DNA of 64,000 nucleotides. It comes from Dimorphilus gyrociliatus (taxonomy: Eukaryota > Animalia > Annelida). Shown one piece after another: positions 7,908 to 56,913 of this stretch (positions are counted from its first letter, which is position 1; every line of letters starts with the position of its first letter). A model generated the notes under the pieces. That model saw nothing but the letters and a program-made list of their open reading frames with translations, was not told the DNA's origin and did no database searches. Location: assembly GCA_904063045.1 (NCBI GenBank), contig CAJFCJ010000050.1, positions 58,263 to 122,262 of the forward strand. Reading direction: 5' to 3'. Both the position numbers and the translations under genes were made by a program.

Positions 7908-8915
7908 TTATATAATTTGAATTTCACACAATTCAATATAATTTACAGATTTTTCCAAGTACAATTGCAAATTAACAAATTTTGTTGGCAAACATTCAAA
8001 GACTTTGCCTAAGCTTTCCTTACATTGTGATTCATCATTGACATAGACAACAAAAGTTGGCTTTTGAGTATTGAAATCTTTTCCATGAATTATAAATTTT
8101 GAGAATATTCTAATAGTTTCTATAGTGAGATGCAGGGGGTTGGCAGTAAAGGTCAGACATGTACTTTGATCATTATCAAACAGATTTTGTTTAATTACAC
8201 TCCATTTGTTATTACCACACACATCAACTGGGAATTTTTGTTTCACTAAAATAAGGGGGAATGTACATTTCAATTTCCAAATACTATATTTGATACGTTC
8301 AGCAGCACCCCCAACATCACCAAGATAAATCTGTTTTAACGGTAGCCTTGACGACTTTACTGAAAATATACCCGAATCATTTGTCCAAACTAGCTTGTTA
8401 TCATTGTAAAATCCTGCTGTGGGGGAAAGCTCGTCCAAACATTTTGTAGTTGAAAAACAATTACATATGCCATCCGTAAATTGTTCAGCTTCAAACTCAG
8501 CACCATCCCAAAATAAGAAGCCATGGTCAGTTTTTAATGATCCATATGCCCAGTAATTTATGCCTTGTGAACAGGTGTGTACGGTTTCTAAAAACTTATC
8601 AACTTCTTTATCAGATAACCCTTCATAGGTTATTAGCTTTTTGAATGAATACTTTGTTTCGTATCTATCATCATTATTCAATTCTTCAATCTCTTCAGAA
8701 TCGTTATCTAGATACACAGTTCCTAATGTATCGTTAATCATTTCACAAGAAATATTAACAGTTTTAGAGTTGGGATGAAATTGCATTTGAAAAAATCCAA
8801 AATTTTGTTTCGATTCTATTATTGCCTGTGAACATGATACATAGAATTTATCGCTATCCTGTGAATATGATTTATTTAGTATTAAGAAGAGATAAACAAG
8901 AATATGGACAATCAT
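7908..8915 (-). CDS. Secreted protein: CASPR/neurexin-IV-type fibrinogen-like domain plus C-terminal discoidin-like module
   Basis: Intact 335-aa ORF with an N-terminal signal peptide. Motifs ITYEGLS...CSQGINY, CNCFSTTKC, WTNDSGIF...RLPLKQIYLGDVG...LKC follow the CASPR fibrinogen-like pattern. Confidence 0.7.
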   Translation of the reverse strand: MIVHILVYLFLILNKSYSQDSDKFYVSCSQAIIESKQNFGFFQMQFHPNSKTVNISCEMINDTLGTVYLDNDSEEIEELNNDDRYETKYSFKKLITYEGLSDKEVDKFLETVHTCSQGINYWAYGSLKTDHGFLFWDGAEFEAEQFTDGICNCFSTTKCLDELSPTAGFYNDNKLVWTNDSGIFSVKSSRLPLKQIYLGDVGGAAERIKYSIWKLKCTFPLILVKQKFPVDVCGNNKWSVIKQNLFDNDQSTCLTFTANPLHLTIETIRIFSKFIIHGKDFNTQKPTFVVYVNDESQCKESLGKVFECLPTKFVNLQLYLEKSVNYIELCEIQII

Positions 8916-13266: not shown

Positions 13267-14196
13267 TCAAGACAAACAAGATTTTAACAGATTTTTGCAA
13301 TCCTTTCTAAATGATTTCAATTTAATATAATAAATGATAAAATTAATAACATTATTAATAAAAAGTATATGATACAATATTGATCCAACATCTGCAAGTT
13401 GTCCTGAAAATGTTGATAGAAAAGGCAAAAGAAAGATTATATAGAGAATTACCAAATAAAAACATAAGAACATTTGCCTGATTGTTCTTTTTGTATTGTT
13501 TTTGGGAAGTTTTGCATTGAAATTTCCAACTGCAAATCTTTTCTTTCTTAAATTATAAAACATAATTAAATATAATCCAATTGATGTTATAAGAATAACT
13601 ATTGTAAGTATCACTACCATATTGACAATTATTGACCCCATTAAACCGTTTCTATTTCCTGGATAGCATAAATATATCTTATCTATAAGGTATTTGTCGA
13701 TTGAGTACAATGCTGAAATTGTAAACAATGTAAGACAATACAATACGATTGATATTCTCCACTTCTTCATTGAGATAGTTACGAATGGCCTACAAACTGC
13801 AAAGAATCTCTCCACAGCTATCATTAACAATATACCAATTGACATCCAAGGAAAAAATACTTGTAAAAATGCTATACAACTGCAGATAGCTTTGTGAGTT
13901 ATAGGTAAAAGACGATTCTGTATATCTGCATAATAAGCTATTGGTATTGAAAAACTACATGTCAACAGATCAACCCATGAAAGATACTTCAATAAAAATC
14001 CATACTGATTCGAGTATATTGACGATTTATTTAATACAAGAATATTAATAATATTTCCAATTATGCCAAATGCTATAATTAATCCATAAATTATTGATAC
14101 AATAATAAATGTATGCATATCCATCTTGAAGAATGAACTATGCATTCTAAAAAACATGTCATGTGACATTATCTCAGTTCTATTATTATTCTTCAT
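13267..14196 (-). CDS. Single-exon class A (rhodopsin-like) GPCR, orphan or peptide-receptor-like
   Basis: Seven hydrophobic segments; TM1 GIIGN, TM2 VDLL, TM3 AVERFFAVCRPF (DRY-like), TM7 NFIIY. First ATG at 14196 (the track ORF starts at a TTG at 14220). Confidence 0.9.
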   Translation of the reverse strand: MKNNNRTEIMSHDMFFRMHSSFFKMDMHTFIIVSIIYGLIIAFGIIGNIINILVLNKSSIYSNQYGFLLKYLSWVDLLTCSFSIPIAYYADIQNRLLPITHKAICSCIAFLQVFFPWMSIGILLMIAVERFFAVCRPFVTISMKKWRISIVLYCLTLFTISALYSIDKYLIDKIYLCYPGNRNGLMGSIIVNMVVILTIVILITSIGLYLIMFYNLRKKRFAVGNFNAKLPKNNTKRTIRQMFLCFYLVILYIIFLLPFLSTFSGQLADVGSILYHILFINNVINFIIYYIKLKSFRKDCKNLLKSCLS

Positions 14197-14361
14197 TTGT
14201 GATCCTGTTTTGTTTTTCAAATAAAGTGGTATGAAAATTTTTCCATGTGTAGATAATTAAAGCTTATGTTTTTTTTTGTTGTGTATCAGATATCTAAAGA
14301 AAAATGATCTAGAAAATCGTCAAATATCAAAGTGGCTTATTGACACATCAGCCATTTTTAG

Positions 14362-15528: not shown

Positions 15529-17370
15529 AAATCCAACATACTTTACCGTAAAATAACGTAAGACACGCAAATAATATATATATATATATATATTACCAGA
15601 TACCAGATTCCTCCATACGGAATTTTTGTCTGTATAGTTAAAGAGAGTTTTATACAACAGTTGAGGAGTGTAGTTAAAGATTCCTATATTTCTAGAATTT
15701 ATTTATTTTGTCTATTAAAAAAAGGAAGAATAGATAGATGTGTGGATGGATGGATGGATGGATTAATTAAATACCAGTTTTGTGAGAAGATAATTAAAAA
15801 AAGAAATAGCAAAAGCCCAAAATCATCTTTATAAAGGACAGCAACTGCAAACGTTTTAAAAGTATTTTTTATTAATTTCATTCATAAAATTTACGTCAAT
15901 TTCACTATCCAGTTGGCAAAATAGCGAATACATATATATTTTCTATACAGTTGAATTTATACTGCTCTCTAACCCTAACCCTAACCCTAAAATCTTCAAC
16001 TGGAATATCAAAATAATAAAAGGGTAGTAAAACAATATATCTTAAAATATTGATATCAAAATTCAATGGTTCTTCTATCATTGTTAAATTTCATTTTTTA
16101 CATTCATCTTTTATGTTAAGGATTGATATTTATAATATGATTGAAATTTTCATCATTAGAATTATGATAATTTCTTTTCTTCATTTATAGTTTTCTCTCT
16201 CTCTTTAATTTCTTTTAGGTCAATTTTGAATAAAAACAATTTTCTTGGTAACTTTAGTCAACAAACCTTTTTTGAAGCAAAATTTCTGTTTCAAGATAAT
16301 AATGTATATATTCAAATATTTGTATTAACTATAACTTTGGTGTGAGAAGCATTTACAGGTGCGTTCAAATGATCTTTTAATGGATTGATTGGTTGCTGGT
16401 AAAATTTCAGCCATTTTGAATAATCTTAAATAACTAATATACATAGTGTATGAATGTAATCGTCATCATGACGTGTGAAAATTTTACCCTAACCCAGCCC
16501 TGGTCCCTGTTTTAAGCGCTTCATTATTCCTAACCCTTAGTTTCGACCAAAATAATTCCAGAATGAGCGTTTTGAACATCCTCCTTTAATAAAATCAGTA
16601 ACTTTCTTGACTAAAATAAAGATGATAAATACGACGATGACATACTAGCATAGGGCTAGTCTTTGATAGATCTTGCCTCAAAATATTAATAATGTTGACA
16701 GAATTGACAGAAAATGGCTGTACACTTAATAGATGCTACGTAAATGATACTTACTACATGCTTACATCATTATTACGTAATACAATAACCCTTGGCGCTA
16801 ACCTTCTTACAAATTGATTCGGTACTCATCTTCCCTCAACTCTACATCTCTTCGTAGTGCCTTACACCTATTTCCGTTCTATTCTGACCAGATCAGGAAA
16901 GTACAATGACTCTTAATAATCCTACAAAATTCAATAAAAGAATATCTGTTCTTGCCTTTAAGTCTAAAGTGAATCCATTCATTAGTTATTTATGGTTTTT
17001 TTCTTCAATATCATATTGAGATATCTGTAAAATGGTCAACAAATAACTGTTAATTAATAATGCAATTCAATAAAAATATTGTCAATATTCAAGGATAATT
17101 AGCAATTTGTATATATAAAGAACATTTAGCAGAGTTTTAGTATTCATTTTCTTTAGAGTTCTGTCAACTATGGCTATTTTAAAAATAGCAACAACAGTCT
17201 TCATTTCCTTTGTTCTAACATTTCAAGAAGCAGGTTAGTAAAAAAGTATATACTGTATACATTCAATTCTTGCCTTCTTGAATCTATTAATAGTTTTAAT
17301 TTTAGTCTTTCTTAAGAAAATAGCATGCTATTAGATGAAGATGTATTGAATTTAGCACCATCTTATATAG

Positions 17371-18005
17371 TGTACTGCTCTTGCTGGCAAAATCTATGCG
17401 TTTGCAAGTTATAACAATACTGGTTCTACTCGAACCTTTAAACAAATGTTTAAATTAAAACGGTTTATTCGCAATAATAATACTTAAGCAAGTAACAATA
17501 TGAGAGTTCGATAGCAGAGTAGATAGTTTGTAAAAGCAGGTTGCCAAATTACCAAACTGTCTTCCAATGTTGAGGAGTAGATGGATGGTTCCAGTGGAGG
17601 TTGTTTCCAGATGATTTTCCCAGGTCCTTGGGTCCAGATGGAAGCTGCATGCCAAATGAGAATAATGAGAATTTATATACTTTGAGGTTTGTCTCTGACA
17701 TCCAATCATCACTTTACAGTTGCCGAAATGTGTAGTTCATATTTATCTTTAGTAACAGGATGTTACAAGGTTCAACATTTAGGAAGGTTAATTGAATTAT
17801 AACTTGGCCACACCCTAGGCAAGTTAATTAAATTATAACTTGGCCAAACCTTTATTGGTAATTAAAGATGAGCCTTCAAGCTGACTAATCAGACTTATGT
17901 TTGGCCAATGTTATAGCATTTTCTTGCGTAGGTTTTAAGATGTACATGTATATGTTGCATAAAATAATAGAGTTCAAGCATGTAAAATATAACCAAAGTT
18001 GTACA
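17371..18005 (-). repeat. 3' LTR
   Basis: Matches 26052-26686 except C17461 vs T26142. TGTAC...GTACA termini; minus-strand TATATAAA and AATAAA motifs. Confidence 0.97.
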
Positions 18006-18006
18006 A

Positions 18007-18020
18007 CTTCCCCCTTCTTT
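18007..18020 (-). other. Polypurine tract
   Basis: AAAGAAGGGGGAAG lies 1 nt before the 3' LTR on the minus strand. Confidence 0.9.
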
Positions 18021-18036
18021 GTGAAGATGAGTCCCT

Positions 18037-20457
18037 TCATCTTGATTTAATGAGAATTACAGGTGGTTGTTCTTCTTCATTAGTTTGATGTTGACTAAAG
18101 CTACAACTTTGTTTCATTAGTTTTGGGTTTTCAGGAGAGTTATCTGTGCTCTCACTTGGGGTAGCAATTTCTTCTCTTTGTTTTCTTCTTCCAATAATAT
18201 AGTTGAAAATGATGATACATACCATTGACACTACAATACTCAAACAAATATTTCGTATGATAACATAAAGTGTTTTCCCAGGTTTATAGTACCAACTATG
18301 GAAAAACTGTTTAATTCCAGATAAATTGGGTACAATGCCATTTTTCTCTGCAACAGTGACCATGTTATCATACCTTGCCTGCTTCTGTTCCAGTGAACTG
18401 ATAACTTGCTTAATTTTTGAGTGCTGGTATGCAATATCCTTCTTTACCCCATGGTGGAGTAGATCAGCTAATCTGGCAATTTCAATTTTTGGTTCAGAAA
18501 GGTGATTGTGGATATGTAACTGCATGGATTTTGCAGACACAGTGTGAAATCTGCATCCTCTTTCTGAATAATACACATACGTTTTGTCTTTCATTGGTTG
18601 GTTTCTTATAGGATTTAATGGGTTGTGAGTTGTTTTGTAGAATAACTTGTTAGACTTACACTCATTATAGGTAATCTCTTCAGGATTGACTTGCTGTAAA
18701 ACATGAGTAACTGGTTCTACTTGGAAAAGCAGGTTGTTCATGGTGACAAGTAAAAATTGAGAACATTTGTTATTCTTTTTTATCATGCTTAAGTCACAAA
18801 CTACTTCTGTTGAGGCTATTGGTGAACATTGTTTAATTATAGCTAATTCTCCCATCTGACTACTGTGCATTCCCAACTCATTTGTTAACACTGTGGTCAA
18901 TTGAGGATCCAAATTTGCTAGTAATGCCATCATTCTGCTTCTTTGAACAAATTGATTGCAGAGAAGACTTGACAGCTGTTGGGTAAACTTTTTTAAATTC
19001 TTAAAATTTGAATCAATACCATGTAGTAAGGTAGATGTTTGGGCAGCTTCTCTCATTTCCAATGGGAATTTGTGGTATGGGTTTTTACTTATCTTATGTT
19101 TCAGTTTTGCTTCCTTCTTCATCTGCTTTTTAGCCATTCTCATGTGTAGAGTAAAATAAATTCCTTCATAGGTAATCTTAAATTCTCTGGCTGGTGGTCC
19201 TTTATACCATATGCCCAATGTTGGTAATACCTTCTTTTTGATTCTTTTCTCACTGTATACATATTTTGAAATCGTCACAGATTGTCTTGTTGCCCTTGTC
19301 CAATTGACTGCTTGCAGCATTTCTTGGATATAATAGTTATCCAGCTCCCAGTAAGATGGACTAATGGGTTGTTGTAGATGATATATCACAACTTCCTTGA
19401 GTGTGCCTTTATTTCTCATTAGTTTATACTTTGTGTTTGTTTCTCTGTACCATTGGTTAAGACTTGGTAAGGGGTTGTTTCGCTTGTATAGTATAATTTG
19501 TTCTTTAACTTTATTGGGATAGTTTAATAGTCGTTTTTCTTCATTTTTGCCAATCTTCTGATATTGTAGCAAATTGTATAGGTGTTCCTTGCTTGTTTCC
19601 TGTATTAAACTCTGTTCCTCCAGTGGTACTAGTACTTTTGTTCCAGGACCACCAATTCCATCAATGAACTTATCTTGATAAGGGATGTCCAGAATAGAAT
19701 ACCCTGGACAAGAATAGTGACCAGCAAATTTGATACAACTAATTCTGTTGCTAATTTTTATCCATGGTGATTGTTGCCCAAGTGTGTAATTATTCTTGAG
19801 GTTTCTAAAGACAATAATTGCCTCTTCTGTCTCACAATAGGACTGCCCTGGTAAACAATCTTCCAGGTAGTCCAGATTAGTTGTAATTTTCATATTAGGA
19901 GGTTGCCAATATGCTTTGCCAAACTGGATAATTGTGGTGTATTCCAGCACCTTGGTAGTTGTTGGCCATGTGTAGGCAGCAGGAAACTGATCTTGGTGGA
20001 TCCAAGTGTTTCTTTTCACCATTAAAGGTTTTCCTTGAAAAGATCGTTTGTCTTTTACCATCTGTCTGCATTGATCATGAGTTACTTTGATAACTGAGTT
20101 AACAATTCTCCTCTTCTTTGCTCCAAAGAAATAGTAAGTGTAAAAATTAGTTCTTAGATACACTTGACATTTTACTGCTCTTGTTTCAATTTCTTCCAAG
20201 TTCAATTCATAGATATCAGCTGTAATTGTCTTGGTTTCTTGTGATTCTATATTACAAGTTGGCTCATCTGCTAGATCAAATGCCTGGCTTGGTAGTTGGT
20301 TAGAACAAAAGTATAATGGTGGTTTAAATGTTAAGGTAATGTTTGCACTTGTAACATGTGCACCTTGGTAGGATGGTTTTGGGACTGTTATTGAGTGGAT
20401 GCAGCCACAGATCACCATTACAGTCATCACTAGTGGAAGCCACAACATCTGTTTCAT
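18037..20457 (-). CDS. env: Envelope glycoprotein, class III fusion-protein-like (gB/chuvirus/rhabdovirus G type)
   Basis: Signal-like MKQMLWLPLVMTVMVICGCIHS (ATG at 20457), Cys-rich ectodomain, candidate bipartite fusion loops YYFFGAK and AYTWPT, gB-like CNQFVQRS..LDP..MGELAIIKQC, C-terminal TM and tail. The frame stays open to at least 20676 (GTG, not ATG). Confidence 0.8.
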   Translation of the reverse strand: MKQMLWLPLVMTVMVICGCIHSITVPKPSYQGAHVTSANITLTFKPPLYFCSNQLPSQAFDLADEPTCNIESQETKTITADIYELNLEEIETRAVKCQVYLRTNFYTYYFFGAKKRRIVNSVIKVTHDQCRQMVKDKRSFQGKPLMVKRNTWIHQDQFPAAYTWPTTTKVLEYTTIIQFGKAYWQPPNMKITTNLDYLEDCLPGQSYCETEEAIIVFRNLKNNYTLGQQSPWIKISNRISCIKFAGHYSCPGYSILDIPYQDKFIDGIGGPGTKVLVPLEEQSLIQETSKEHLYNLLQYQKIGKNEEKRLLNYPNKVKEQIILYKRNNPLPSLNQWYRETNTKYKLMRNKGTLKEVVIYHLQQPISPSYWELDNYYIQEMLQAVNWTRATRQSVTISKYVYSEKRIKKKVLPTLGIWYKGPPAREFKITYEGIYFTLHMRMAKKQMKKEAKLKHKISKNPYHKFPLEMREAAQTSTLLHGIDSNFKNLKKFTQQLSSLLCNQFVQRSRMMALLANLDPQLTTVLTNELGMHSSQMGELAIIKQCSPIASTEVVCDLSMIKKNNKCSQFLLVTMNNLLFQVEPVTHVLQQVNPEEITYNECKSNKLFYKTTHNPLNPIRNQPMKDKTYVYYSERGCRFHTVSAKSMQLHIHNHLSEPKIEIARLADLLHHGVKKDIAYQHSKIKQVISSLEQKQARYDNMVTVAEKNGIVPNLSGIKQFFHSWYYKPGKTLYVIIRNICLSIVVSMVCIIIFNYIIGRRKQREEIATPSESTDNSPENPKLMKQSCSFSQHQTNEEEQPPVILIKSR

Positions 20458-20675
20458 GTTAGCTCTTCCTGTGTTGGCTATAGTTGAATGGTTGAAAATT
20501 TTGTGTTGTTGTTCCACTCTGATAGTTATTCCATCTTCTAACTCTATATATTGTGGTTCCACTTCTTGTTGGGAATCTAATTGTTCAGAGATGATTTTAG
20601 TCTCATCTAAAAATATCACTGACTCATTGTCTGTGTCACTTGTATTTTCTTTCTCATCTTGGGATGAATCTACCA

Positions 20676-22865
20676 CTATGAGGGACTCATTATCGAATGG
20701 GTTATGTCAATAATTTCACCTTCAATAATTATTGACTCATTATCCGAATGGGTTATATCAATAATTTCGCTTTCAATAGTTATTGACTCATTGTCTGAAC
20801 TAGATATTTCATCTTCTCTATCAGAGATAATGTTTGCCTCTGAATCTGTATTTTTATCCAGTTCATTATTTGTTTCTGTGTCATCACTTTCAGATGAGCT
20901 TGAAGGTTCATTGAGACTGTAATTACTGTCTGTTTTGAAAGTATTGCTTGTGTCATAACCAGTATCAGAATTAGTAACTTCCATCTCTGAGTCATCACTA
21001 TCTGAACTTTCTGATGAAGAGTCATGCTGTCCCATCATGGCTATAGTGACTTTGTTTAGTTGAGGTTGCCTTATTCTTTCAGCCAGGTTCCCTTTCCTTC
21101 TATCAAATTTGAGAGAACACTGTTTAGCTTCAAAATTGAGGTTTGCTCCCACAGTTTGTAGGAAATCACAACCAAGTATTATTGCTATGTCTAGATTTTC
21201 CATAACTATAAATTCTTGTTTCATACTTTCTCCAGCAAATTGGATATTCAGCTTTACGCTTCCTTTTTGCTTTAAAGCTTTCCCATCAGCTGAAGTTATA
21301 ATTGGTAAGCCAATTGTTTCTTTATCCATAATTGTAACATCCATTAACTTGATTTCTTTTTCAGTAATAAAGGATCTCAATGCTCCTGTGTCACACAAGG
21401 CAATGACTTCTTGGCCTTTTTGATTCTTCAAACGGAATTGGAAGTCATTTCTTCCTTCTACCTGAGAAAGATATTGGAGGTGTGTTATTTCCTTCTCCAC
21501 AAGGTGAAAGATTGTTGTTGCTTCTTTCCTTGTTTCCAACTTATTAGATTCATTGGCTAGTCTTAATCTGCTACCATGTACCAACTTGCATGTATTATCA
21601 TCCATTTGTATTTCATATATCCACTTTTGATGATTGACTTTTGTTATTCGGTATGGGCCTAACCATTTTAAAGAAGGGATTTTTGTTATTGCAATTCTTG
21701 CAGCATCATTTCTTAAGAATACTTCATCATCAACCTCAAAATATTTTGGAAGATTGAGATTTCTATTCTTTCTTTCCCTATATTGTTCTTTTGCCATGAT
21801 GGATTTACAGAAGGCTGTAGCTCTTAACTGTACCAATTGCTGCTGGTGATTGAATACAAATAGTACATTTGTTTCAGGAGAGGTAGTATGCATTGTTACA
21901 TCAATCAGTGTTCTTGTGCTGGTGCCAAAAAGAAGTTCCTGGGGTGGTAGTCTTGTACTTCCTACAGGTGATTGATTCAAAAATGCTTGAATCAAGGGTA
22001 GGTTTGCAACCCAGTTATGCTGATTTTCTTCCACCACTAATTTATTGATTTCCTTCCTCACTTCTCTATTTCTTCGTTCAACTAGTCCATTGCTCTGGCT
22101 TCTATAAGCTGTTGTTTGGATTTTCTCAATACCTAATACCTTCATAAACTCTTTAAAAGCTTTACCAACAAAGTTTCTTCCTTGATCTGTCAACATTTGT
22201 TTTGGAATTCCAAAAATGGGAAAAAATCTGTTGAAAAGAAGGTTTGCAATTTCTTTACTGGTTTGCTGTTTGAGTGCATATAAAACTGTGTATCTACTGA
22301 AATGATCCACTATCACAAGTATGAATCTGTATGACTTAACCATGGGTAAGGGTCCCATTATATCCATGGCTACCAACTCCATTGGTGATGCAGGGTGAAA
22401 GGTTTCTACCAAAGGGTATACTCTACTCCTACCATTCATTTGTTCACACAAAGTGCAATCCTTTATTGAATTCTCAATCATAATCTTTAATTTTGGGTGC
22501 CAAAAGGTCTTTGTAATTATTTGTAATGTCATTCTGGGTCCATGGTGATTGTGAATTTTATTTTTATGGAATTTAGGGAGCAGAGTTAGCATCAAATGGT
22601 CAGGTAAAACCAGAATGTTTCTTTCTTCAAGGATAATCCAGATCATTTCCTTGTGAACAAACATCTCCATTATGAAAGGTGTAAAAGTTCCAAAATAAGG
22701 AATAGGTAGCTGACCATCCAGTGTTAAATATTCTTTAATTGATTTCAAATTCACATCTTTTTCTTGCTCTGACTGTAAGTCAACAGAAGACAAATCAATT
22801 TTCTCTTCACTGTTATCACTGGTAGATACAAAAGATAGATCTGGTGTATGTTCATACTGTTCCAT
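20676..22865 (-). CDS. pol: Integrase plus GPY/F module, second aspartic protease and acidic spacer (frameshift-separated part of pol)
   Basis: HHCC (H..HHG...CTLC), D168/D227/E263 (D-x35-E), WLGPY module, then IALCDTGALRSFI...IILGCDFL retropepsin and a Ser/Asp/Glu-rich tract. Confidence 0.92.
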   Translation of the reverse strand: MEQYEHTPDLSFVSTSDNSEEKIDLSSVDLQSEQEKDVNLKSIKEYLTLDGQLPIPYFGTFTPFIMEMFVHKEMIWIILEERNILVLPDHLMLTLLPKFHKNKIHNHHGPRMTLQIITKTFWHPKLKIMIENSIKDCTLCEQMNGRSRVYPLVETFHPASPMELVAMDIMGPLPMVKSYRFILVIVDHFSRYTVLYALKQQTSKEIANLLFNRFFPIFGIPKQMLTDQGRNFVGKAFKEFMKVLGIEKIQTTAYRSQSNGLVERRNREVRKEINKLVVEENQHNWVANLPLIQAFLNQSPVGSTRLPPQELLFGTSTRTLIDVTMHTTSPETNVLFVFNHQQQLVQLRATAFCKSIMAKEQYRERKNRNLNLPKYFEVDDEVFLRNDAARIAITKIPSLKWLGPYRITKVNHQKWIYEIQMDDNTCKLVHGSRLRLANESNKLETRKEATTIFHLVEKEITHLQYLSQVEGRNDFQFRLKNQKGQEVIALCDTGALRSFITEKEIKLMDVTIMDKETIGLPIITSADGKALKQKGSVKLNIQFAGESMKQEFIVMENLDIAIILGCDFLQTVGANLNFEAKQCSLKFDRRKGNLAERIRQPQLNKVTIAMMGQHDSSSESSDSDDSEMEVTNSDTGYDTSNTFKTDSNYSLNEPSSSSESDDTETNNELDKNTDSEANIISDREDEISSSDNESITIESEIIDITHSDNESIIIEGEIIDITHSIMSPS

Positions 22866-22960
22866 TTTAACTGAAATAGAGGGAGAATTCTCCTTGATTC
22901 TTCCATGAATTAGCTCTTCAAAAAATACTTTCCTTGGGGGTGTATATTCTTCTAATCTTG

Positions 22961-23206
22961 TTAAAGCATCTGCTCTATTTTTTGTCCTGTCACATAATTA
23001 ATTGTAAATTTTAAATCCATTAAAGCCATGACCCATTTTGCTGTGCTAACATTCAACTTGTTTTGCTTGAATGTTTGTACTGGACTCTGACAGTCAGTAT
23101 ATAAAAAGAATGCCTTGTCTTGAAGGTAATGTAAAAATTTCTTTACAACCCAGTAAATACCAAATGCTTCCTTTTGGTAGGCTGCATATTTCATTTGATT
23201 ATTGTT
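22961..23206 (-). CDS. pol: C-terminal half of RNase H, out of frame between two 1-nt indels
   Basis: NQMKYAAYQKEAFGIYWVVKKFLHYL...FFLYTDCQ continues YASKQF from the upstream ORF and rejoins as KNRADALTRL. Confidence 0.9.
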   Translation of the reverse strand, partial: NNNQMKYAAYQKEAFGIYWVVKKFLHYLQDKAFFLYTDCQSPVQTFKQNKLNVSTAKWVMALMDLKFTINYVTGQKIEQML

Positions 23207-25991
23207 GGAATTGTTTTGAAGCATAGGCAATGGGTTTCATTGTTTTCTTCCCATTCTCATCTACATAAACTTGTTCAAGAACTCCTCCTACAGCTACATT
23301 CGATGCATCTGTTGTTAAGTGAAAATCTTTAGCAAAATCAGGTAGTTGTAATACAGGAGGGTTAACTACTGCATCTCTCAACTTGAAAAATGATTGCTTG
23401 GCTTCCTCAGTCCATTGCAATTTATCCTTTTTCCCATGTAGTTTCATTAACATATACAGAGGTTTAGCTACTCTTGCAAAATCTTGTATAAATTTTCTGT
23501 AATAGCCACAAAACGCAACAAAGCTTAGTAGTGAATTTGCAAACACTGGTGGCTGTAAATTATATAATTTATCTGTCTTGGACTTATCTGTTTCAATCCC
23601 CTTTTCTGATACAATGTGTCCCAAGAATTGAACTTGTTCTTTCAAAAACACACATTTACTTAGTTTAATCTTAAAATTGTACTTTTGAATCTGTTGAAGA
23701 ATGGTCTCCAATGCTTCCCAATGTTGGTCCAGCGACTTGGTAAATATTATTATGTCATCAAGGTAGTTTAGGCACAAATGCTTTACATCCTTTAGCACAA
23801 ATGAATTCATTACATAACTAAAATGAGGAGGGGCATTCGTTAATCCAAAAGGCATCTTAATAAATTCAAACAAGCCAAAAGGTGTAATAAATGCTGTTTT
23901 AGACCTATCTTCTTTCTTGATGTTAATGTGGTGGTATGCACTTGTCAAATCCATTGTAGAAAAGAATTTATTTCCTCCTCCCAAATGGTCAAAAAGATCA
24001 TCTTGATTTGGCAGTGGATACTTGTTTTTAACTGTCATTTTGTTTAGTTTTCTATAATCTACACACATTCGTAGACTACCTTCCTTCTTTCTTACGAAAA
24101 CAATTGGTGAAGCCCAATTGCTCTTGCTTGGTTGAATAACTTTGCTTTTTACCAATTCAGCTATCTGTTGCTTACATTCTTCTTGTTTTTGAGGAGGCAT
24201 TCTATATGGCCTTTGTCTATATGGTGTTGAACCTGGTTCAAGAGTTATTTCCAAGGGTGGTACCTCTGGATTGCCAATATCAAATCTGTCTTCTGCAATA
24301 GTTTCTTTATATTTTGCCAGAATTTGGGTAACTTTGTTCTTCATCTCGGGATTTTCTTGTTCAATTGTTGTCTGAAGGGTATGTATTTGACTCTCATTCT
24401 TTTTCATAATAAGAGGAACTGGGTAAAACCCTTTGAAAGATAAGTGTTGTGTTCCAACAGGGTAATTCTTTTCTGTACCTGGCTGGAGTATAATCTGTCT
24501 CTTGCCAAAGTCAAGGGTAGCTCCATTTTGTTGTAGAAAGTCACACCCAATAATACATTGTTGTGTAATGATTTTGTTGATCAGAAAGCGTTGTTTAATA
24601 ATCTTTCCATTAAAATAAAGTCTGAGAATGATTTCTCCACATATCTCAATGCTATTTCCTGAAGCATCTCTAGCATTTTTCACAGTTTGTTCTGGGAAGG
24701 ATGCTTTTCCTTGAACTTGTCTTAATACCTTTTTTGAAATGAAAGATCTGTCACTACCAGAGTCTATCAAGGCATCAAACTTAAAACCAGTATTAGTTTC
24801 AAATTGTCCAATAAATGTTGAAGCATTTCGCTCAGATTGTTTGCTTTGTAACAGCTGACAAGTGGATTCGTCACTATCTGAAAAACAGAGAATATCTTGA
24901 ACTTCGTCGTTTTCTGACATGCTTTCATTGTCTAATGTTTCTAATTTTTGTAGCTTAGGTTCCTCTTTCAGTATCGTCTTTGCTGGTTGATTTTTCTTAT
25001 AATACCTGTTTGTTGTAGTTGGTGCATACTTTTGGACTTTTTGGCTTGAAAACTTTTCTTTAGTAGCATTTTTGTTGTCAGGTACATGCTTTCTATTCCA
25101 GAAATTTGGGGTTTCTGTAGAAGCATCTTTTCTGATTACCTGGGTCTTTTTGGTCTCTTTTCTTTGTTGAGTTTCCAATTTTGACACCATTGTGATCGGT
25201 TTTCTTTGAGTTAGTTTTAATGAAGTTTCTGCTTGCTTAGCAGCCTCATATAGTTCTGCCAATGTTTGACATTTAGGATGTAAGGTGTACACTAAATGTA
25301 GAATATCCTGTTGTAATCCTCTTTGTAAAACTTCCATCAGTTTTATTTCTTTCATAGTTGCAAGCAATTGTGGTTCCATTGGTCTAGGTGGAGAAAACCT
25401 CTTTATCAATTTCTTTGCTCTATTAACAAACTGAACCACACTTTCGCCATTCATTTGCTTTAAGTTAAGCAATTTCTCCTGATACTCCAAAGGATCTAGA
25501 TCAAATTCGTCATGGAGGGCTTTCCATATTTCCTCCACAGTAGGCTCTCCATCCAGAGCCAACACCAAATCCTTTGCAGGACCAGTTAAATAATCTAAAA
25601 GATTTGCTTTCACAACATCTTCTCCTATCCAACCATAAGCATAACATGCCTGATTAAAGTCTTCTTTGAATTTTGAACACTCCTTGCTTCCATCATACAA
25701 CTTGAGAATAGTTCTTTGAGGGCGGTCCCAAGCAGCCCTTAATGCTTGAATTACTGTTGTGATATCAACATTTGGGTTCTGTGCTGGGTGATGTGTTCCA
25801 TCTCCATGATCTGTTGGAATTGTGATTCGATTTCTTTTCATTTCACTCACCAATCTATCATAGTCTTCAATTAGTCTTTGTTGCCTTTCTGACATTCCTG
25901 CTGGCTGAATTGTAATTGTTGGAGTTGCTGGGGTTGAAGGGTTAGAGTCTGTAACTGCCCCAGTGGTATTTCCATTTTCTCCTTCTGCCAT
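23199..25991 (-). CDS. gag-pol: Gag-protease-reverse transcriptase-RNase H (N-terminal part), in one frame
   Basis: ATG at 25991 just after the PBS; retrotransposon gag core; LIDSGSDRSFI...IIGCDFL protease; WASPIVFVRKK, CVDYRKLN, MPFGL and YLDD in RT; TDASNVAVGGVL in RNase H. Confidence 0.95.
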   Translation of the reverse strand: MAEGENGNTTGAVTDSNPSTPATPTITIQPAGMSERQQRLIEDYDRLVSEMKRNRITIPTDHGDGTHHPAQNPNVDITTVIQALRAAWDRPQRTILKLYDGSKECSKFKEDFNQACYAYGWIGEDVVKANLLDYLTGPAKDLVLALDGEPTVEEIWKALHDEFDLDPLEYQEKLLNLKQMNGESVVQFVNRAKKLIKRFSPPRPMEPQLLATMKEIKLMEVLQRGLQQDILHLVYTLHPKCQTLAELYEAAKQAETSLKLTQRKPITMVSKLETQQRKETKKTQVIRKDASTETPNFWNRKHVPDNKNATKEKFSSQKVQKYAPTTTNRYYKKNQPAKTILKEEPKLQKLETLDNESMSENDEVQDILCFSDSDESTCQLLQSKQSERNASTFIGQFETNTGFKFDALIDSGSDRSFISKKVLRQVQGKASFPEQTVKNARDASGNSIEICGEIILRLYFNGKIIKQRFLINKIITQQCIIGCDFLQQNGATLDFGKRQIILQPGTEKNYPVGTQHLSFKGFYPVPLIMKKNESQIHTLQTTIEQENPEMKNKVTQILAKYKETIAEDRFDIGNPEVPPLEITLEPGSTPYRQRPYRMPPQKQEECKQQIAELVKSKVIQPSKSNWASPIVFVRKKEGSLRMCVDYRKLNKMTVKNKYPLPNQDDLFDHLGGGNKFFSTMDLTSAYHHINIKKEDRSKTAFITPFGLFEFIKMPFGLTNAPPHFSYVMNSFVLKDVKHLCLNYLDDIIIFTKSLDQHWEALETILQQIQKYNFKIKLSKCVFLKEQVQFLGHIVSEKGIETDKSKTDKLYNLQPPVFANSLLSFVAFCGYYRKFIQDFARVAKPLYMLMKLHGKKDKLQWTEEAKQSFFKLRDAVVNPPVLQLPDFAKDFHLTTDASNVAVGGVLEQVYVDENGKKTMKPIAYASKQFQQ

Positions 25992-26029
25992 ATTTACTTT
26001 CTCAAAACTTTTGAATAAACCAAAAGAAT

Positions 26030-26047
26030 ATCCTGTCGGCTGCGCCA
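26030..26047 (-). other. Primer-binding site, tRNA-Ser type
   Basis: TGGCGCAGCCGACAGGAT lies 4 nt after the 5' LTR. It resembles the tRNA-Ser PBS (TGGCGCAGTCGGTAGGAT) of Drosophila 17.6/ZAM-type elements; tRNA identity is from recall. Confidence 0.8.
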
Positions 26048-26051
26048 AATT

Positions 26052-26686
26052 TGTACTGCTCTTGCTGGCAAAATCTATGCGTTTGCAAGTTATAACAATA
26101 CTGGTTCTACTCGAACCTTTAAACAAATGTTTAAATTAAAATGGTTTATTCGCAATAATAATACTTAAGCAAGTAACAATATGAGAGTTCGATAGCAGAG
26201 TAGATAGTTTGTAAAAGCAGGTTGCCAAATTACCAAACTGTCTTCCAATGTTGAGGAGTAGATGGATGGTTCCAGTGGAGGTTGTTTCCAGATGATTTTC
26301 CCAGGTCCTTGGGTCCAGATGGAAGCTGCATGCCAAATGAGAATAATGAGAATTTATATACTTTGAGGTTTGTCTCTGACATCCAATCATCACTTTACAG
26401 TTGCCGAAATGTGTAGTTCATATTTATCTTTAGTAACAGGATGTTACAAGGTTCAACATTTAGGAAGGTTAATTGAATTATAACTTGGCCACACCCTAGG
26501 CAAGTTAATTAAATTATAACTTGGCCAAACCTTTATTGGTAATTAAAGATGAGCCTTCAAGCTGACTAATCAGACTTATGTTTGGCCAATGTTATAGCAT
26601 TTTCTTGCGTAGGTTTTAAGATGTACATGTATATGTTGCATAAAATAATAGAGTTCAAGCATGTAAAATATAACCAAAGTTGTACA
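26052..26686 (-). repeat. 5' LTR
   Basis: 635 bp, one mismatch to 17371-18005; followed by ATAG on the + strand. Confidence 0.97.
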
Positions 26687-27079
26687 ATAGACAGGTTATT
26701 CTTTTGATGTAGGTTGCAATCCCTTTAGCCTTATAGCTCTAGAGTCATCTACTTTTATTCATCCCCAGACGGAGATGGGTGCATTGTTTTACGAGTTTTG
26801 GTCATAGTGCTTGACCTTTTATACTAAAAGTTGAAGTTTCTCTGTTTTTAGACAAGTTAAAGGAAAACTTTTTCTATTCAAGTTTGCATTATGAAAATGA
26901 TAAAATTGATCGCTTCTCTTTTCTATTTACATCTAAATATGTCGTTAAAAAATATAGTTTTGTTCTCCATATTGAATTTCTATTAATTCTTACTTTGTTA
27001 AATATTAAATGCTACTCTGCACAAATTCATTTATCTATAAAATAAAATCATTAAGATTATAAGGCTTCTCTTTACAATC

Positions 27080-30000
27080 TTGAATTTCTTGTATTGATCA
27101 TTAATGATAGCTTTGTTACAGAAATGCTTTGTTCTAACAAAATTGATGATTGTTCACAATTTGAATTGTGCGAACAAGGTCAATGCATGTGTAATATAGA
27201 ATTTGGTCAAGAAATTTGTGATAATAGTAAGAATAAGAATATCTTTATCATAAATATTCTTTTTAAATAAAAAATCTATTGTTCAAATAGGCAACAATCT
27301 GATTTTAATAAGAATGAAAACTGGTAAATTTAATACAAGCAAAAAAATTCTTTCAATGGCATCTATTAGCCAATGTTATATGCACTGTTTAAATAATACT
27401 CAATTCAATTGTGCTGGAATATCATACATAAAACAAAATGAGGGTTATCAATGTCATCTTTTCAGTGAAATATCTTATCCATTAATTGAAAATGAAAATT
27501 CATATCTAATTATTCTAAAAGGTAAAGAAACAATAGATACTTTCTCTCTCTGTAAATTCAAATATCCATTTAACTACTTTCCTTTAAAAAATAGACAAAA
27601 CTCTAGGAGTATGTGGTGAAAATTTTAGTCTAACACCACCAATGGAACAATGTTATATAAGAATATGGATAGAAAATGGCTGTTTTGCCGAGGAATTTAA
27701 GCCTAATGATTATGAAAAATTAATGACTATTACGGAATTTATTGATTATTCGAAAGAAATGTTTAAATTGGCTGCACAGAAATTTAGTGTAAATGAAAAT
27801 TCTGAAATTTACAGACTAATCTGCTTTAAAAGAATTAGTTCCGAAAAAAATATAGCATTTAATAAGGAAGTAAATGATCATGGACAATCCTATTATCCAT
27901 TAGGAAGTCCATTGCATGCTGTTGATGGCCTATTGCACAGTGACTATTCATTAGGTGCCTGTTCAGAATTGTATGATATAATGAATCCTACAATTTCAAT
28001 AAAATTACAAGGAAAACACAGAATTAAAAAAGTTGTTTTATGGCCAACAAATGGTAAAAGTAAGACAAAAACAAAAGAATATAATTTGGTTTTTTTTCAA
28101 ATATTTTTTTTTATTTTAGTAAATCAAACAGTAAACATTTATGCAGAAAATTCAATTAATTTCTGTGCAAACAATGTCAATATGATCATTGATTTACCTA
28201 CTAAAGTCTATTGTAATAATCTAAAGATGAATAGAGCTGATGACGTCACGATTCAAGAAATATTCCTGACTTCCCTCTATCTTTGTGAAGTAGAAATTTA
28301 TCCAGGTATTTATTTTCAAAATCTAATTTTTTTCTATATTTTGCTGAGTTTTACAACAACCAATTTATATTTTTCCTTCTCTTTCAGAAAATGTAGCTTA
28401 TTTAAAACCAGTTTTCGCCAAAATCGCAAATGAACATTTATCTAAATTAACTGATGGACATGAAAGCGATTTTGCAACAATGAATCTTGGGATTGATTAT
28501 TGGGTTACAATTAACCTTTTGGCTTACTATAATGTTTTTATTGTAGATTTGAAACCTTCGTTAACTTCTGAGGGAACCAATCAAAATATTTTGATTGAAT
28601 TAGCCAATGAAAATCCAGCTCTAGTTAAAAATTCTGCAAATTTCAATTATTGTGGCGAAAAGACTTATTTAATTCAGATGCATCATTATTATTCAATTGT
28701 CTGTAATAAAGGGGGTGTCAAAGGTCAATTTGTTGTTTTTCGAAGTAATTTCAATCCTTTTCAAAAAGTTGAAATTATTGAAATTGAAGTAATTGGAAGA
28801 TATTTAAGAAATTCGGATAAAGAGAATGTTAATATCTTTTTAAATAAACCATCCTGGTCAATTTCCCATCATAATAAACAAACTGCTGCTTGTAAATTAA
28901 CAAATGGTATTTTTCATGATATTTTTCAAACAAAGAAAGAGAGATATCCTTGGGCAAGAGTGGATTTGCTTGGAAATTATAGAATTTTTAAAATGGCTAT
29001 TATGAGTAGAAGAAGTACATAGTATATATGTTAATTTTAGATCAAATAACCTATTTACTTGTATCACTTTTAGATGCAAATAGAGCCAGATCTATAAGAG
29101 GAATATTATCAAACTATACAGAATTTATTATAAAAGATCAATACAATTCTTCTCAATTATGCTTTAATAATGACAATGATTTTGAAAGTGGCGAATACAG
29201 AATTTGGACTTGTCAACAGCCATTTCCGGTTGGTAGATTTGCAACAATTTATCTTCACGTGGAAGAGAAAGAATATTTTAGTGCTTATGAAATTGAAGCT
29301 TTTGGTCAACAAATAATCAATGATAATTTTACATTAATACCATTAGTTAAGAGTGACAGAACTGTCAATAAACAAGGTTTTATTGCTAAATTGGAAAGTG
29401 AGCAATTACCTTTGAAAGCTATTGATGGTTTAGCGCTGAACGATAAAACAGAAAATGGTTTTTTCTCATGTACTGGAATTAGTATGAATGATGACTATGA
29501 GGGAAGAATTACCATTTATATGGATAGTCTTCATACTGTGGACCAAGTTACTCTTCTTCTTCCAATCAATTCAATGACTTGTAATATATTTTTTGTCGAA
29601 TATTTGGAGATTTCATCACAGTTCATCCAATAAAATTCCCTTGTTCATGAAACTTTTGGGCATGTGTTGTCCTTAATTTGTTGACTCATGATCACTTTTC
29701 TTGGTCAATCTAGATGAAATCTTCAACAAGCCAACTATATTACTATTTTTAAAAGATTTAATAAGAATAATTTGTTTATTTCTAGATATTTCAAACATTT
29801 ATCGTGATGCTGCTATTCAAGTTGCAGTTGAAATATTGGATATATACTTACAAAGGCAAATTTGCTCTTTAAAAAACAAAGCAACACTTGAATATTTATT
29901 CTATAATTGTCAATTTATTGGAGATAGAATATCATTTCGTATAATTAATGGGACAAGAAAAGTATTGAAAATTTGTGAAGTATATGTTTTTGGGGAACAA

Positions 30001-34555: not shown

Positions 34556-35921
34556 TTAGAATTGAAATGACAAAAATGTAAATATTTCTCTCAAAGGATT
34601 TTCCAAGTCTTCTTTCACTAAAACTGCAAATGACTGACAATGGAAATCTGAGCATGCGCATTGAAATGAGCATGTATCAAACATATCTCTCTCTTTAAAA
34701 TATCCATTGTTTGAATTAAGAAATGTACATTCATTTATAAATTCTTTACCATGTTTTTCATAATTTGTCATTAGACTCAACTTTCCAATCAGACAGAATT
34801 TTTCTATTGCCACACTTTGAACTTGAATTTTGAATGTTTGAATTCCATAGCTTGATATATTTGTGATGGATTTGAAATTTCCATTACAGTCTTTAGTGAT
34901 TGTATTATTGGCATATTCATACTTTGTATTGTTCAGGATAATTGTTATGAAAGTGAGACTCTCATTTAAATAATAACCAAATACATCAACTTCACATAAA
35001 GTAAGTATATTAGAAGTTGGACTTGTCCTCAGCCAAACTGTCACATAACGACCAGTTGTCACATTGGAACATCTCACTGTTGTAAATGGAGGTACAATTC
35101 CATCATAGCCTCCGCATAGTCCATCCATTGATTCAGTTGGAATATCATCTCTTTCAGACACTGTTATCATTAAATTATTCAATCTCTCAAGATAAGATAT
35201 TCTTCCAATAATTGATACTGCAAAAATTCTACTTTTATCAGCCAAATCAACTTTCCACCATGGAAAAGTAGCTAAATCATCTGTATGAGAACAAGAACTT
35301 TGTTGAATATACTTTCCACTACTCATTCCATCAACAGCATACTCTCCACCACTATTACCCCATATACTGCTTATTGAAGTTGTTTTATTTTTTGCAAGAT
35401 TTTTTAAACTCCAAATTTCAATTTCACATATTGTTAACCATGCATCAACAGCATTGATATCAAAGATGACTGTTGTTGCATAATGGGGTCTGTATTTGTA
35501 GTGAAATGTTCTAGAGCCACCAGCTATTGTAAACTGATCATAATATCCAAATAGTTGAAAAGTGTTGAGATCTATCAAAGAAATATCTTTTGACAGTTTT
35601 GTTCTTATGGACAATTTTTGTAGTTTTTCTGGTAATGAATCTCTATTCAAAACTCTTATTGTTCTAACAATATATGCTCTAGGAAATTGAATAAGAAGCC
35701 ATGGATTATCTACGTTGAGGGTATGAGCACATGATCTAAATGCAAAATCAGGATTAAACTGTCCATCAACAGCTGTAAAACTATATCCTTTTTCATATGT
35801 AGAAGATTGGTTAGTAAACTGTTGATAAGCAATATTCACATGATTAATTATACTTCCATAATATTGTCCAATTCGACAAAACACCAAAATATAGTTCAAT
35901 TGGAAAAAAAAAATTCAACAT
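34556..35921 (-). CDS. Secreted tandem F-type lectin (fucolectin/FTP) domain protein
   Basis: 447-aa ORF with two FTP domains (AVDG...CAHT...PWLLI...NRDSLPEKL...ICEIEIW; AVDG...CSHT...PWWKVDL...LCEVDVFG). A signal peptide starting at ATG 35921 is restored if the A10 run at 35904-35913 is A9. Confidence 0.88.
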
Positions 35922-49659: not shown

Positions 49660-50756
49660 TTATATAAATATTGTCTATGTTTGCGATGGAAAGAACGACT
49701 GCCTTTCAAATGAAGATGAACATCTGTGCAATGAAAATGATAAAAATGAAGAATTTCAATGTTTTACTTCACCGGAAACGATCAGTTTTAAGTTGGTTTG
49801 TGATTTTATACATGATTGCATTAATGGATCAGACGAATTTTATTGCGGTAGGGCACATTTCAACAACATACACCAGTGTAATCATTTCTTTTTAACTTGT
49901 CCAACTCTTCAAATTCAATTCAACAGCAAGTCCTCAAGGATATTTTAAATGTATAGATGAAAAAAGGTGCTATCATTTTCACCCAGTTTGCGATCAAATT
50001 GTCAATTGTCAACGCGGAAGCGACGAACTTTTCTGTATTAATACAAAACCTTCTACTCCAATTTTGTGCAATTACCCAAAATTCTATTTTCAACTGGTAT
50101 GCTCTTTAAATAAAACTAAACAATCATATGGAAACAACGACCAATCATCGTCCATTGTTTTGACAAACAACGTATTGAAATTGCTGGAAATTTATGGTGG
50201 AATCAGTGTAAAATTTACAAAATTGCAAACAACAAATCTTCAATTATTCACATTGAATAAAAATGATAATTTTTTTCAAATTTCAAATTTGAAAATGTTT
50301 GCAAATTTAATTTATTTAAATTTGAAAAATAATAATTTGAAATTCAATGAAAAGAGTTTAAAGCAATTCAAATTCAATCTTTTTGGTCTATTGGCAAATT
50401 TAATGGCGTTATTATGCCTTTATAAAATTCAAATTTCAGCAAAAACCTTTAGAGCTTGTCTGGTGATGAATGATAATTTGGCATCAATCTACTTTTTATC
50501 AATTACCATTGCAGATAGTGTCTTTCGCAACAACTATATTATGAATAATGAAATATGGCGTCATAGTCCATTTTGCAGATTTCTTGCTCTGTCCTTGACA
50601 TTTTCATTTGCCTTTTCCAGTATCAATTTAGTGTTGTTGACGCATGAGAGATATAAATCTATAGTGGCGCCATTACACCAATCCTTAATTGGAACCCTGT
50701 TCAACATGTCAGGATTGGAGTTTGACATATTGTTTGAATCGAAAACTATGGTCTAA
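49660..50756 (+). pseudogene. LDLa-LRR-GPCR (GRL101/LGR type C-like), truncated after TM3
   Basis: VCDGKNDCLSNEDE, VCDFIHDCINGSDE, VCDQIVNCQRGSDE; LRR LIYLNLKNNNL; IYFLSITIAD...WRHSPFCRF...LLTHERY. Confidence 0.75.
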
Positions 50757-50869: not shown

Positions 50870-51475
50870 TAGATTGAATTTCAATTGAAACACTTTGTTT
50901 AAAGGTTCAAGTAGAACCAGTACTGTTATCAGTAGCAACTACATAAATTGGCAAGACCAGAGCAGTACAAATTTGGCACAGCTGACAGGATCTTTAATTT
51001 GGTTTATTTAAAAAAATAACTTTGGAAGAAAAAGAAATATGGCAGAGGGAGGAAATGGAATTACCACTGGAGAAGACTCTAATCCTTCTACCCCAGCAAC
51101 TCCAACAATTACAATTCAACCAACAGGTATTTCAGAAAGACACTAATACTAGTTTCAAATTTGATGCCAGGGTTCTTGACTTTTTCAAAAGACAGATTAT
51201 ACTGCAGTCAATTACAGAAAAGAATTATCCACTTGGAACTGAACTTCTATCCTTCAAAGGACTTCACCCAGTTCCTTCCATCACAAAGAAAACTGAGAGT
51301 CAAATACATACTCTTCAGACAAATATTGAACAGGAAAATTCAGAGCTGGAACTAAAAGTCACAAAAATCCTGGAAAAATATCAAGATACTATTGCAGAAG
51401 ACAGATTTGATGTTGGAAATCCTGATGTTCCACACCTGGAAATTACTTTACAACTGGGTTCAACCCCATATACCC
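50870..51475 (+). mobile_element. Diverged, multiply deleted relative of the 17371-26686 LTR element
   Basis: LTR 3' end ...GAGCAGTACA, AATT, PBS TGGCACAGCTGACAGGAT, gag start MAEGGNGITTG..DSNPSTPATPTITIQPTG, then fused protease and RT-linker fragments. Confidence 0.9.
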
Positions 51476-56432: not shown

Positions 56433-56913
56433 AGTTTGAGGTATTTATATTCTATTTAATATGACATCCAATGAACTAAAATGCATAGCAATGCTCATAG
56501 ATCAAGGAGAAAATAACTTCTATAAAATTTTATCCTGTGTGTATGACAATCTCAAAAGTACAACAAATGTCACTGTATAGATTATTAAGAAATTGGTCAA
56601 TAGTATTTTATATTCTTGTCTATCTTCTTTAGCTTTAGATCCTTGTCATATTCTTTATCCAATAAACTGCTTACAAATGAAGTATAGAAAACTTTGTATA
56701 TTATAAATTTGAATAATTTATATTAGTAAAGTGATTTACTTTGAAGTGTTAAGTGCTCACTTAATGAGCAATTAGTGTATGAAACATTTTCTTTAAATAA
56801 TATGAACTTTTTATTGTAAAGCTTTCTAGCAAATGTATGAATAATTAAACACCAATTTGTATATTTATCCACATTTCGGACATTTAGAAAGTTTACAGCA
56901 GGAGAGGAAAAAC

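Follow-up and report, generated by a model that had tools for sequence, protein, structure and literature searches.

Retropepsins build one active site from two subunits, and retroviruses and long terminal repeat (LTR) elements are taught as one-protease systems in which dimerisation of the protease times the maturation of the particle. Several described families stand close to the locus treated here. Dingle (Dinophilidae Gypsy-like elements) is a recently expanded Ty3/gypsy family of the annelid Dimorphilus gyrociliatus, with a large protein resembling herpesvirus gB encoded downstream of the integrase, as given in the accessible text of the genome paper (PMC7854359). In a 2026 survey of Ty3/gypsy elements that carry env, an element of D. 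gyrociliatus is listed and gB-type env genes are reported for annelid clades (accessible text of PMC13524379). Here, we describe a second retropepsin, named PR2, that lies between the integrase and the env-like gene of a single env-carrying Ty3/gypsy element from D. gyrociliatus. The element is 9.3 kb long and occupies positions 17371-26686 on the minus strand of a 64,000-nucleotide stretch of contig CAJFCJ010000050.1 (assembly GCA_904063045.1, positions 58,263 to 122,262 of the forward strand). This whole stretch is called the window, all coordinates refer to it, and the parts of the element are on its minus strand. The protease (PR) in the canonical position between gag and the reverse transcriptase (RT) is called PR1.

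The element probably belongs to the published Dingle family of dinophilid annelids, judging from its sequence features, and it most probably ranks among the env-carrying Ty3/gypsy group that PMC13524379 surveys. What is probably new is the arrangement of integrase (IN), PR2, and env, the element family and the class of env-carrying Ty3/gypsy elements being already known.

PR2 and its relatives

The initial annotation had placed a complete retropepsin in the integrase frame, ahead of the env-like gene, and this is confirmed by Pfam, by a structural model, and by alignment. The PR2 module spans 21018-21536, with the Pfam retropepsin domain at 21108-21398, and translation of the minus strand at 21110-21446 yields the very peptide given in that annotation. 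The catalytic Asp codons lie exactly where they had been reported, at 21390-21392 in PR2 and at 24762-24764 in PR1. PR2 shares its open frame with the zinc and core domains of the integrase, and the region is read as coding rather than as a chance motif because the frame stays open for 326 codons after the GPY motif in a sequence with a GC content of about 35%.

The domain passes the cut-offs of two Pfam families, RVP_2 (E=2.8e-7, 30.8 bits, cut-off 20.3) and RVP (23.2 bits, cut-off 20.7). A retropepsin alignment of 63 sequences was used to score the conserved columns in both proteases. The catalytic motif of PR2 is DTGA, its Asp falls in a column that is invariant in 63/63 sequences, and all five invariant or near-invariant columns are retained, including the ILG motif and three near-invariant Gly residues. 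The AlphaFold2 model of PR2, a half-barrel with a flap hairpin, has a mean predicted local distance difference test score (pLDDT) of 87 and a predicted template modelling score (pTM) of 0.80. Its best Foldseek matches, at a probability of 1.00, are DDI1 RVP domains and the proteases of equine infectious anaemia virus (EIAV), human immunodeficiency virus 1 (HIV-1), and xenotropic murine leukaemia virus-related virus (XMRV), and the model also matches retropepsin-type proteins in a viral structure library. PR2 is, with very little doubt, a genuine and complete retropepsin (peptidase A2) domain. PR1 keeps the same five conserved columns, yet it scores below every Pfam cut-off, and for this reason PR2 is the more canonical of the two proteases.

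Among solved structures, the closest to PR2 are DDI1 by fold and ASPRV1 (SASPase) by sequence (E=0.01), the likeness consisting in the half-barrel with the catalytic Asp. Both are host proteins with other partner domains, and their identity to PR2 is only 10-17%; unlike them, PR2 is plainly of retroelement origin.

The PR2 domain alone was searched against 1.84 billion representative proteins of any length, which gave 142 matches at E<=1e-3, of which only two, P0001 and P0003, are close. A word-indexed protein search with the PR2 region within its 729-residue frame returned P0001 as the sole match. P0001 is the D. gyrociliatus gene model CAD5126309.1, whose residues 1-102 comprise a PR2-type protease reduced to its C-terminal half and the adjoining linker; identity to PR2 is 59% over 107 residues and 66% over 79, the linker after the domain included. 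A TIR domain lies at residues 282-402 and the remainder of P0001 is a TIR-domain protein, so its start is a PR2-type relic that was taken into a host gene model. The model itself is either an annotation chimera or one with a transposon-derived first exon.

P0003, which comes from an ENA contig, is 656 residues long. The match to PR2 covers its last ~110 residues and includes ~36 residues ahead of the domain (42% identity over 109 residues, 50% over 86), and the first ~540 residues of the protein are collinear with the gag of the element and continue into the position of PR1 without large gaps, the two gag parts being 24% identical (E=1e-17). From this collinearity, P0003 appears to carry its PR2-type protease in the ordinary gag-adjacent place. 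Both flanks of the PR2 module are shared with relatives, the N-terminal side with P0003 and the C-terminal side with P0001, and these two, a relic and the gag-adjacent protease of a related element, are the other known members of the PR2 lineage. A further candidate, P0002 (5434 residues), scored 95 bits to PR2 through 22 short stretches, but it was rejected as probably a repeat-driven false match because it has no BLASTP match to the translations of the element's three open reading frames (ORFs).

PR1 and PR2 are strongly diverged and both keep the catalytic and hydrophobic-Gly motifs, in agreement with the initial annotation. They are 29-30% identical (30% over 122 residues, pairwise E=1e-13, 45 bits), and a nucleotide comparison of the two found no similarity. 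A score of 45 bits is the level at which either of them matches unrelated gypsy-type proteases, and P0003 is outside the best 25 matches of PR1.

The weaker matches of PR2 include Pol-type proteins that contain two retropepsins, both with a D[ST]G motif, and that are unannotated in this respect. P0026 and P0089 have the order PR-RT-RNase H-PR-IN (RNase H, ribonuclease H). Between the two proteins, the second copies are orthologous and 42% identical and the first copies 44% identical, whereas first and second copies within a protein share 22-29%. Because identity between the proteins exceeds identity within them, the second retropepsin predates their split and has been kept since; no paper on a second retropepsin of this type between RNase H and integrase was found in the literature. 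P0181 and P0029, from ENA contigs, have the order gag-PR-RT-RNase H-IN-chromodomain, followed by ~750 unmatched residues, a second PR, a hydrophobic segment, and a tail. In a 3129-residue protein of this type, hydrophobic segments lie at residues 2114-2138 and 2969-2996, the first of them opening the ~750-residue stretch, and this stretch between chromodomain and second protease had no match among the sequences compared. P0101 has the order PR-PR-RT-RNase H-IN. It is one of a group with two or three tandem retropepsin domains (P0005, P0006, P0007, P0009, P0031, and P0101), several of them short proteins, in which one chain may supply the whole active site. The named sources of tandem-retropepsin proteins are Drosophila palustris and the fungus Apiospora kogelbergensis. 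P0138 and P0064 were not counted as two-protease elements, since, with a second gag or a second RT, they look like two elements run together.

The second PR of the Pol proteins P0026/P0089, P0181/P0029, and P0101 is located elsewhere than in the D. gyrociliatus element. Judged on protein sequences, no two-retropepsin database protein shows the order IN-PR-Env with PR immediately behind IN. A word-indexed search with the IN-PR2 span returned gypsy Pol proteins at <=~30% identity, none with a protease listed behind IN. These comparisons show a second retropepsin to be a recurrent feature that has been stably retained at least once.

Origin and possible role of PR2

The relationships described above suggest that PR2 is likely a separate protease lineage, neither a recent copy of PR1 nor a nested foreign insertion. 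Since its close relatives are a D. gyrociliatus relic and the gag-adjacent protease of a related element, we propose, at roughly even odds, that PR2 was relocated behind the integrase by recombination between related elements. The initial annotation had left the choice between duplication and capture to a phylogeny; pairwise comparison, through the relationships to P0003 and P0001, now makes recombination with a related element likely. The best explanation as a whole, to which we assign a probability of about 0.45, is that a PR2 of separate lineage was relocated by recombination, was kept, and acts at the Pol/Env end.

According to this explanation, PR2 would be translated at the C-terminal end of Gag-Pol, or as part of a Gag-Pol-Env chain if pol and env form one frame in intact copies. 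It would pair with a second retropepsin subunit, which could be another PR2 or, as a possible partner, PR1, and the pair would form the active site. The cut would fall at the C-terminal end of Pol, with the integrase on one side and the acidic tail and the membrane-targeted Env leader on the other. In a single pol-env chain, PR2 would stand between cytosolic Pol and membrane-targeted Env, and its cut would free Gag-Pol from the membrane; by either translation route, trimming the acidic tail off the integrase would be a plausible task. This junction-processing role of a putative protease is offered as a tentative proposal from the gene order.

The layout of the region is consistent with a position at the Pol/Env junction, with PR2 followed by an acidic pol tail, a Met-less acidic leader in the env frame, and then the signal peptide. 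The Ser/Asp/Glu-rich tail lies at 20679-21026, with D, E, or S at 61/116 of its positions. It contains a 51-nt tandem repeat at the end of pol (20684-20799, minus strand; 2.3 copies, 89% matches), whose product is an acidic repeat of 17 residues. The leader is open in the env frame at 20458-20676, as seen from ORF reading; its acidity matches that of the pol tail, whose repeat motif recurs in it weakly (E 0.07-0.13). Its ~78 stop-free codons before the signal-peptide Met have a chance probability of ~0.003, an estimate from base composition. Because so long an opening is unlikely by chance and contains no Met, translation would have to enter the leader from upstream, either by continuity with pol or by splicing from an upstream AUG. 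There are precedents for both parts of the proposal: a single Gag-Pol-Env ORF is described for Atlas virus (accessible text of PMC9094657), and long retention of a second retropepsin is seen in P0026/P0089.

Several points weigh against this explanation. The analysis covers one full copy of the element, and the pol of that copy has two frameshifts, so this copy alone cannot vouch for function. P0001 lacks the catalytic half of the protease and is a relic within a host gene model. P0003 ends within its protease, and its gag could have been joined to PR2 by an internal deletion, a case that would favour an old duplication inside the family instead. Entry into the leader could also be by splicing from an upstream AUG and not by pol continuity.

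A more far-reaching version holds that the recruitment of a second retropepsin has happened repeatedly among Ty3/gypsy lineages, at varied sites in Pol (RNase H-PR-IN, IN-chromo-X-PR, PR-PR, and IN-PR-Env) and without being recorded so far, and, jointly, that intact copies encode a Gag-Pol-PR2-Env chain in which PR2 serves as a dedicated junction protease, either as a homodimer or as a cis pair with PR1 in the manner of the lobes of pepsin. As a joint claim, it must be considered unlikely.

The rival account that survives best, a real though minority possibility, treats PR2 as a passenger, the recombination scar of a related element's 3' part or module, which has no role and is intact only through the youth of the family, each new copy descending from a master that worked until recently. 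With PR2-type proteases found at the canonical site of a related element, a template switch would be a simple origin. The element also has PR1, whose own catalytic motif is kept, the pol of this copy is already broken, and the only other PR2 seen in the species group is a relic. Against an unused domain stand the retention of every conserved column and a Pfam score above that of PR1. PR2 and P0001 differ by ~40% at the protein level and still share domain and linker; without a use, the domain would have had to keep its frame open over a long period at 35% GC. The second retropepsins conserved between diverged members of another lineage (P0026/P0089) also argue for retention.

An old duplication, in which PR2 arose from PR1 in an ancestor of the family and P0003 is internally deleted, is unlikely. 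PR1 and PR2 would then be halves of one active site, within or between chains, an arrangement in keeping with the two subunits that retropepsins need per active site and with the existence of tandem two-retropepsin proteins. The rankings fit it in part, as PR1 would rank ~7th among the PR2 matches in 1.84 billion proteins, and PR2 ranks 3rd for PR1 among the sequences compared. However, the 45 bits between the two are no higher than either reaches with unrelated gypsy-type proteases, and the collinearity of P0003 with gag-PR1, without large gaps, is as expected for a canonical gag-PR protein.

The initial annotation had named the remnant of a nested unrelated element as a case against its reading of PR2, and this case, or that of an assembly chimera, is very improbable. 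The assembly is probably a long-read one and shows three frame changes (PMC7854359), which is what can be said for it. Nevertheless, one LTR pair and one 4-bp duplication bracket the whole, and no internal LTR, internal duplication, or second or foreign RT or IN was found. PR2 is in frame with IN, and the acidic tail comes next in the same frame; the GC content of PR2 (0.364) is close to that of the element (0.354), and a diverged relative, P0001, shares PR2 with its downstream linker. Least probable of all is an action of PR2 on host proteins such as restriction factors rather than on its own polyprotein, for which an apparently competent protease domain is the one point in favour, whereas the sequence gives no pointer to host targets and the Pol/Env position and acidic tail suggest a polyprotein role.

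Layout of the element and its surroundings

The ends of the element are those of a Ty3/gypsy element. In element sense, the 5' LTR lies at 26052-26686 and the 3' LTR at 17371-18005; each is 635 nt long with TG..CA ends, and the two differ by one mismatch (LTR pair comparison and blastn of the LTR against the window). The target-site duplication ATAG, read in the sequence, flanks them at 17367-17370 and 26687-26690. A primer-binding site (PBS)-like stretch that starts with TGG is located at 26031-26047, 4 bases past the 5' LTR, and a purine run at 18007-18022 is the polypurine tract adjoining the 3' LTR. No tRNA gene that could name the primer of the PBS was found in the 64-kb window. Because a single LTR pair with one mismatch and one 4-bp duplication bracket everything, the whole element, PR2 included, was inserted as a single unit and transposed recently. 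The flanks, with a GC content of 0.28-0.30, are poorer in GC than the element.

Gag-pol, from the gag Met to the pol stop, spans 20676-25991 as one part, as delimited by ORFs and Pfam, and its pol is broken by the two frameshifts. A capsid-like region of gag (25299-25610) matches Pfam PNMA weakly, below the cut-off (E=6.7e-4). PR1, with the motif DSGS, lies at 24471-24788 and was placed by a weak Pfam match and by alignment to PR2. It is followed by the RT domain (23610-24095; RVT_1, E=1e-33), the RNase H domain (23018-23414; RT_RNaseH and RT_RNaseH_2), and the integrase (21537-22604). The last comprises an H2C2 zinc domain (22434-22604; Integrase_H2C2, E=8e-9), a DDE core (22101-22388; rve, E=3.4e-13), and a GPY/F module with the GPY motif at 21651-21659. 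The Pfam domains show the Ty3/gypsy order PR-RT-RNase H-IN, and the nearest relatives of IN are gypsy-type Pol proteins at ~30% identity.

A single frame, starting at the gag Met, covers gag, PR1, and RT. In comparison with six Pol relatives (tblastn), the pol of this copy requires two frame switches, or has four stops if it is read straight through. The end of pol and env are in different frames, with one further frame change between them, which may be natural, env having a frame of its own, or may come from a mutation or from an indel in the assembly, and this copy has no uninterrupted reading frame from gag to env. The D. gyrociliatus genome was sequenced with PacBio (accessible text of PMC7854359), and the pol frameshifts could be indels of a long-read assembly.

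Counted from the Met of the signal peptide, the env-like gene extends over 18037-20457 including the stop and encodes 806 residues; both its position and its layout are env-like. A hydrophobic signal at the N terminus (~20392-20457), a membrane span at the C terminus (~18178-18270), and an ectodomain with 14 Cys residues and 4 N-glycosylation sequons are features of a type I membrane glycoprotein as far as the sequence goes. The protein had no Pfam match, no homologue at E<=1e-3, and no PDB sequence match at E<=1. A match of 13.6 bits to Phlebo_G2_C, seen in Pfam at E<=10, was taken as noise, and a single-sequence model of Env (pLDDT 34) was unusable. The likeness of the Dingle protein to herpesvirus gB was described from a ten-copy alignment (accessible text of PMC7854359); it was not reproduced for this Env by Pfam, PDB, or protein-database searches.

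Elsewhere in the window, 50879-51472 on the plus strand is the relic of a related element at ~80% nucleotide identity. Its interior is deleted, and what is left comprises one end of an LTR, the beginning of gag, and a fragment from immediately after PR1; it contains no PR2 part. The host ORFs of the window include a cluster with F5/8 type C (discoidin-like) domains at 28480-29022 (+), 34556-35899 (-), and 56857-58233 (+). Near this cluster are rhodopsin-type receptor ORFs at 13267-14220 (-) and 50064-50756 (+), and a leucine-rich-repeat ORF lies at 60225-61526 (-). Two host ORFs correspond exactly to NCBI proteins, 56914-58230 (+) within the F5/8 type C cluster and 7911-8915 (-), which has no Pfam match.

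Comparison with known systems

A second retropepsin conserved in one polyprotein would raise the possibility of divided labour between the two proteases, of a heterodimeric or single-chain active site, or of a way of coping with an Env that is fused to Pol. If PR2 is conserved across copies of the element, it offers a natural system for studying how env-carrying retroelements separate their cytosolic and membrane products, and the two-protease Pol proteins in the databases would then merit a systematic survey. Even as a passenger, PR2 documents the exchange of modules between related elements.

A functional analogy to the proposed role exists among RNA viruses. The alphavirus capsid protease and the flavivirus NS2B-NS3 protease, the latter at the capsid anchor, act in cis ahead of a glycoprotein signal sequence, and these cytosolic proteases detach the glycoprotein in the membrane from the part of the polyprotein that stays in the cytosol. 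The analogy is one of function only, as they are serine proteases of an unrelated fold, and it applies only if pol and env are one chain.

The initial annotation knew of no described family with such an architecture. In agreement with this, nothing relevant came out of literature searches for a further protease in LTR elements, and the texts and supplements of PMC7854359 and PMC13524379, figures aside, make no mention of one in their accessible parts. The statement must be qualified in that the family is probably the published Dingle and that other Pol proteins with two retropepsins exist. Dingle shares with our element the near-identical LTRs, the target duplication, and the large env-like protein past the integrase, and the AT-rich host, the long-read assembly, and D. 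gyrociliatus as the source of the best outside match of PR2 fit the assignment as well. The accessible text on Dingle (PMC7854359) names the region downstream of the integrase 'env' without mention of a second protease.

Atlas virus, an endogenous element of the hookworm Ancylostoma ceylanicum (Belpaoviridae), encodes a single uninterrupted Gag-Pol-Env polyprotein, as this element would if intact copies run from pol into env without a change of frame. Unlike Atlas virus, the copy in the window has pol and env in different frames. Atlas virus also belongs to another family, its Env is phlebovirus-like, and a second protease is not mentioned in the accessible text (PMC9094657). The metazoan 'errantiviruses' share with this element a gag, a pol of the order PR-RT-RNase H-IN, and an env with signal peptide and membrane span. 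According to the accessible text of the survey, however, their POL has one protease, and the extra domains behind IN are chromodomains only (PMC13524379), whereas the element described here has a retropepsin and an acidic repeat tail in that place.

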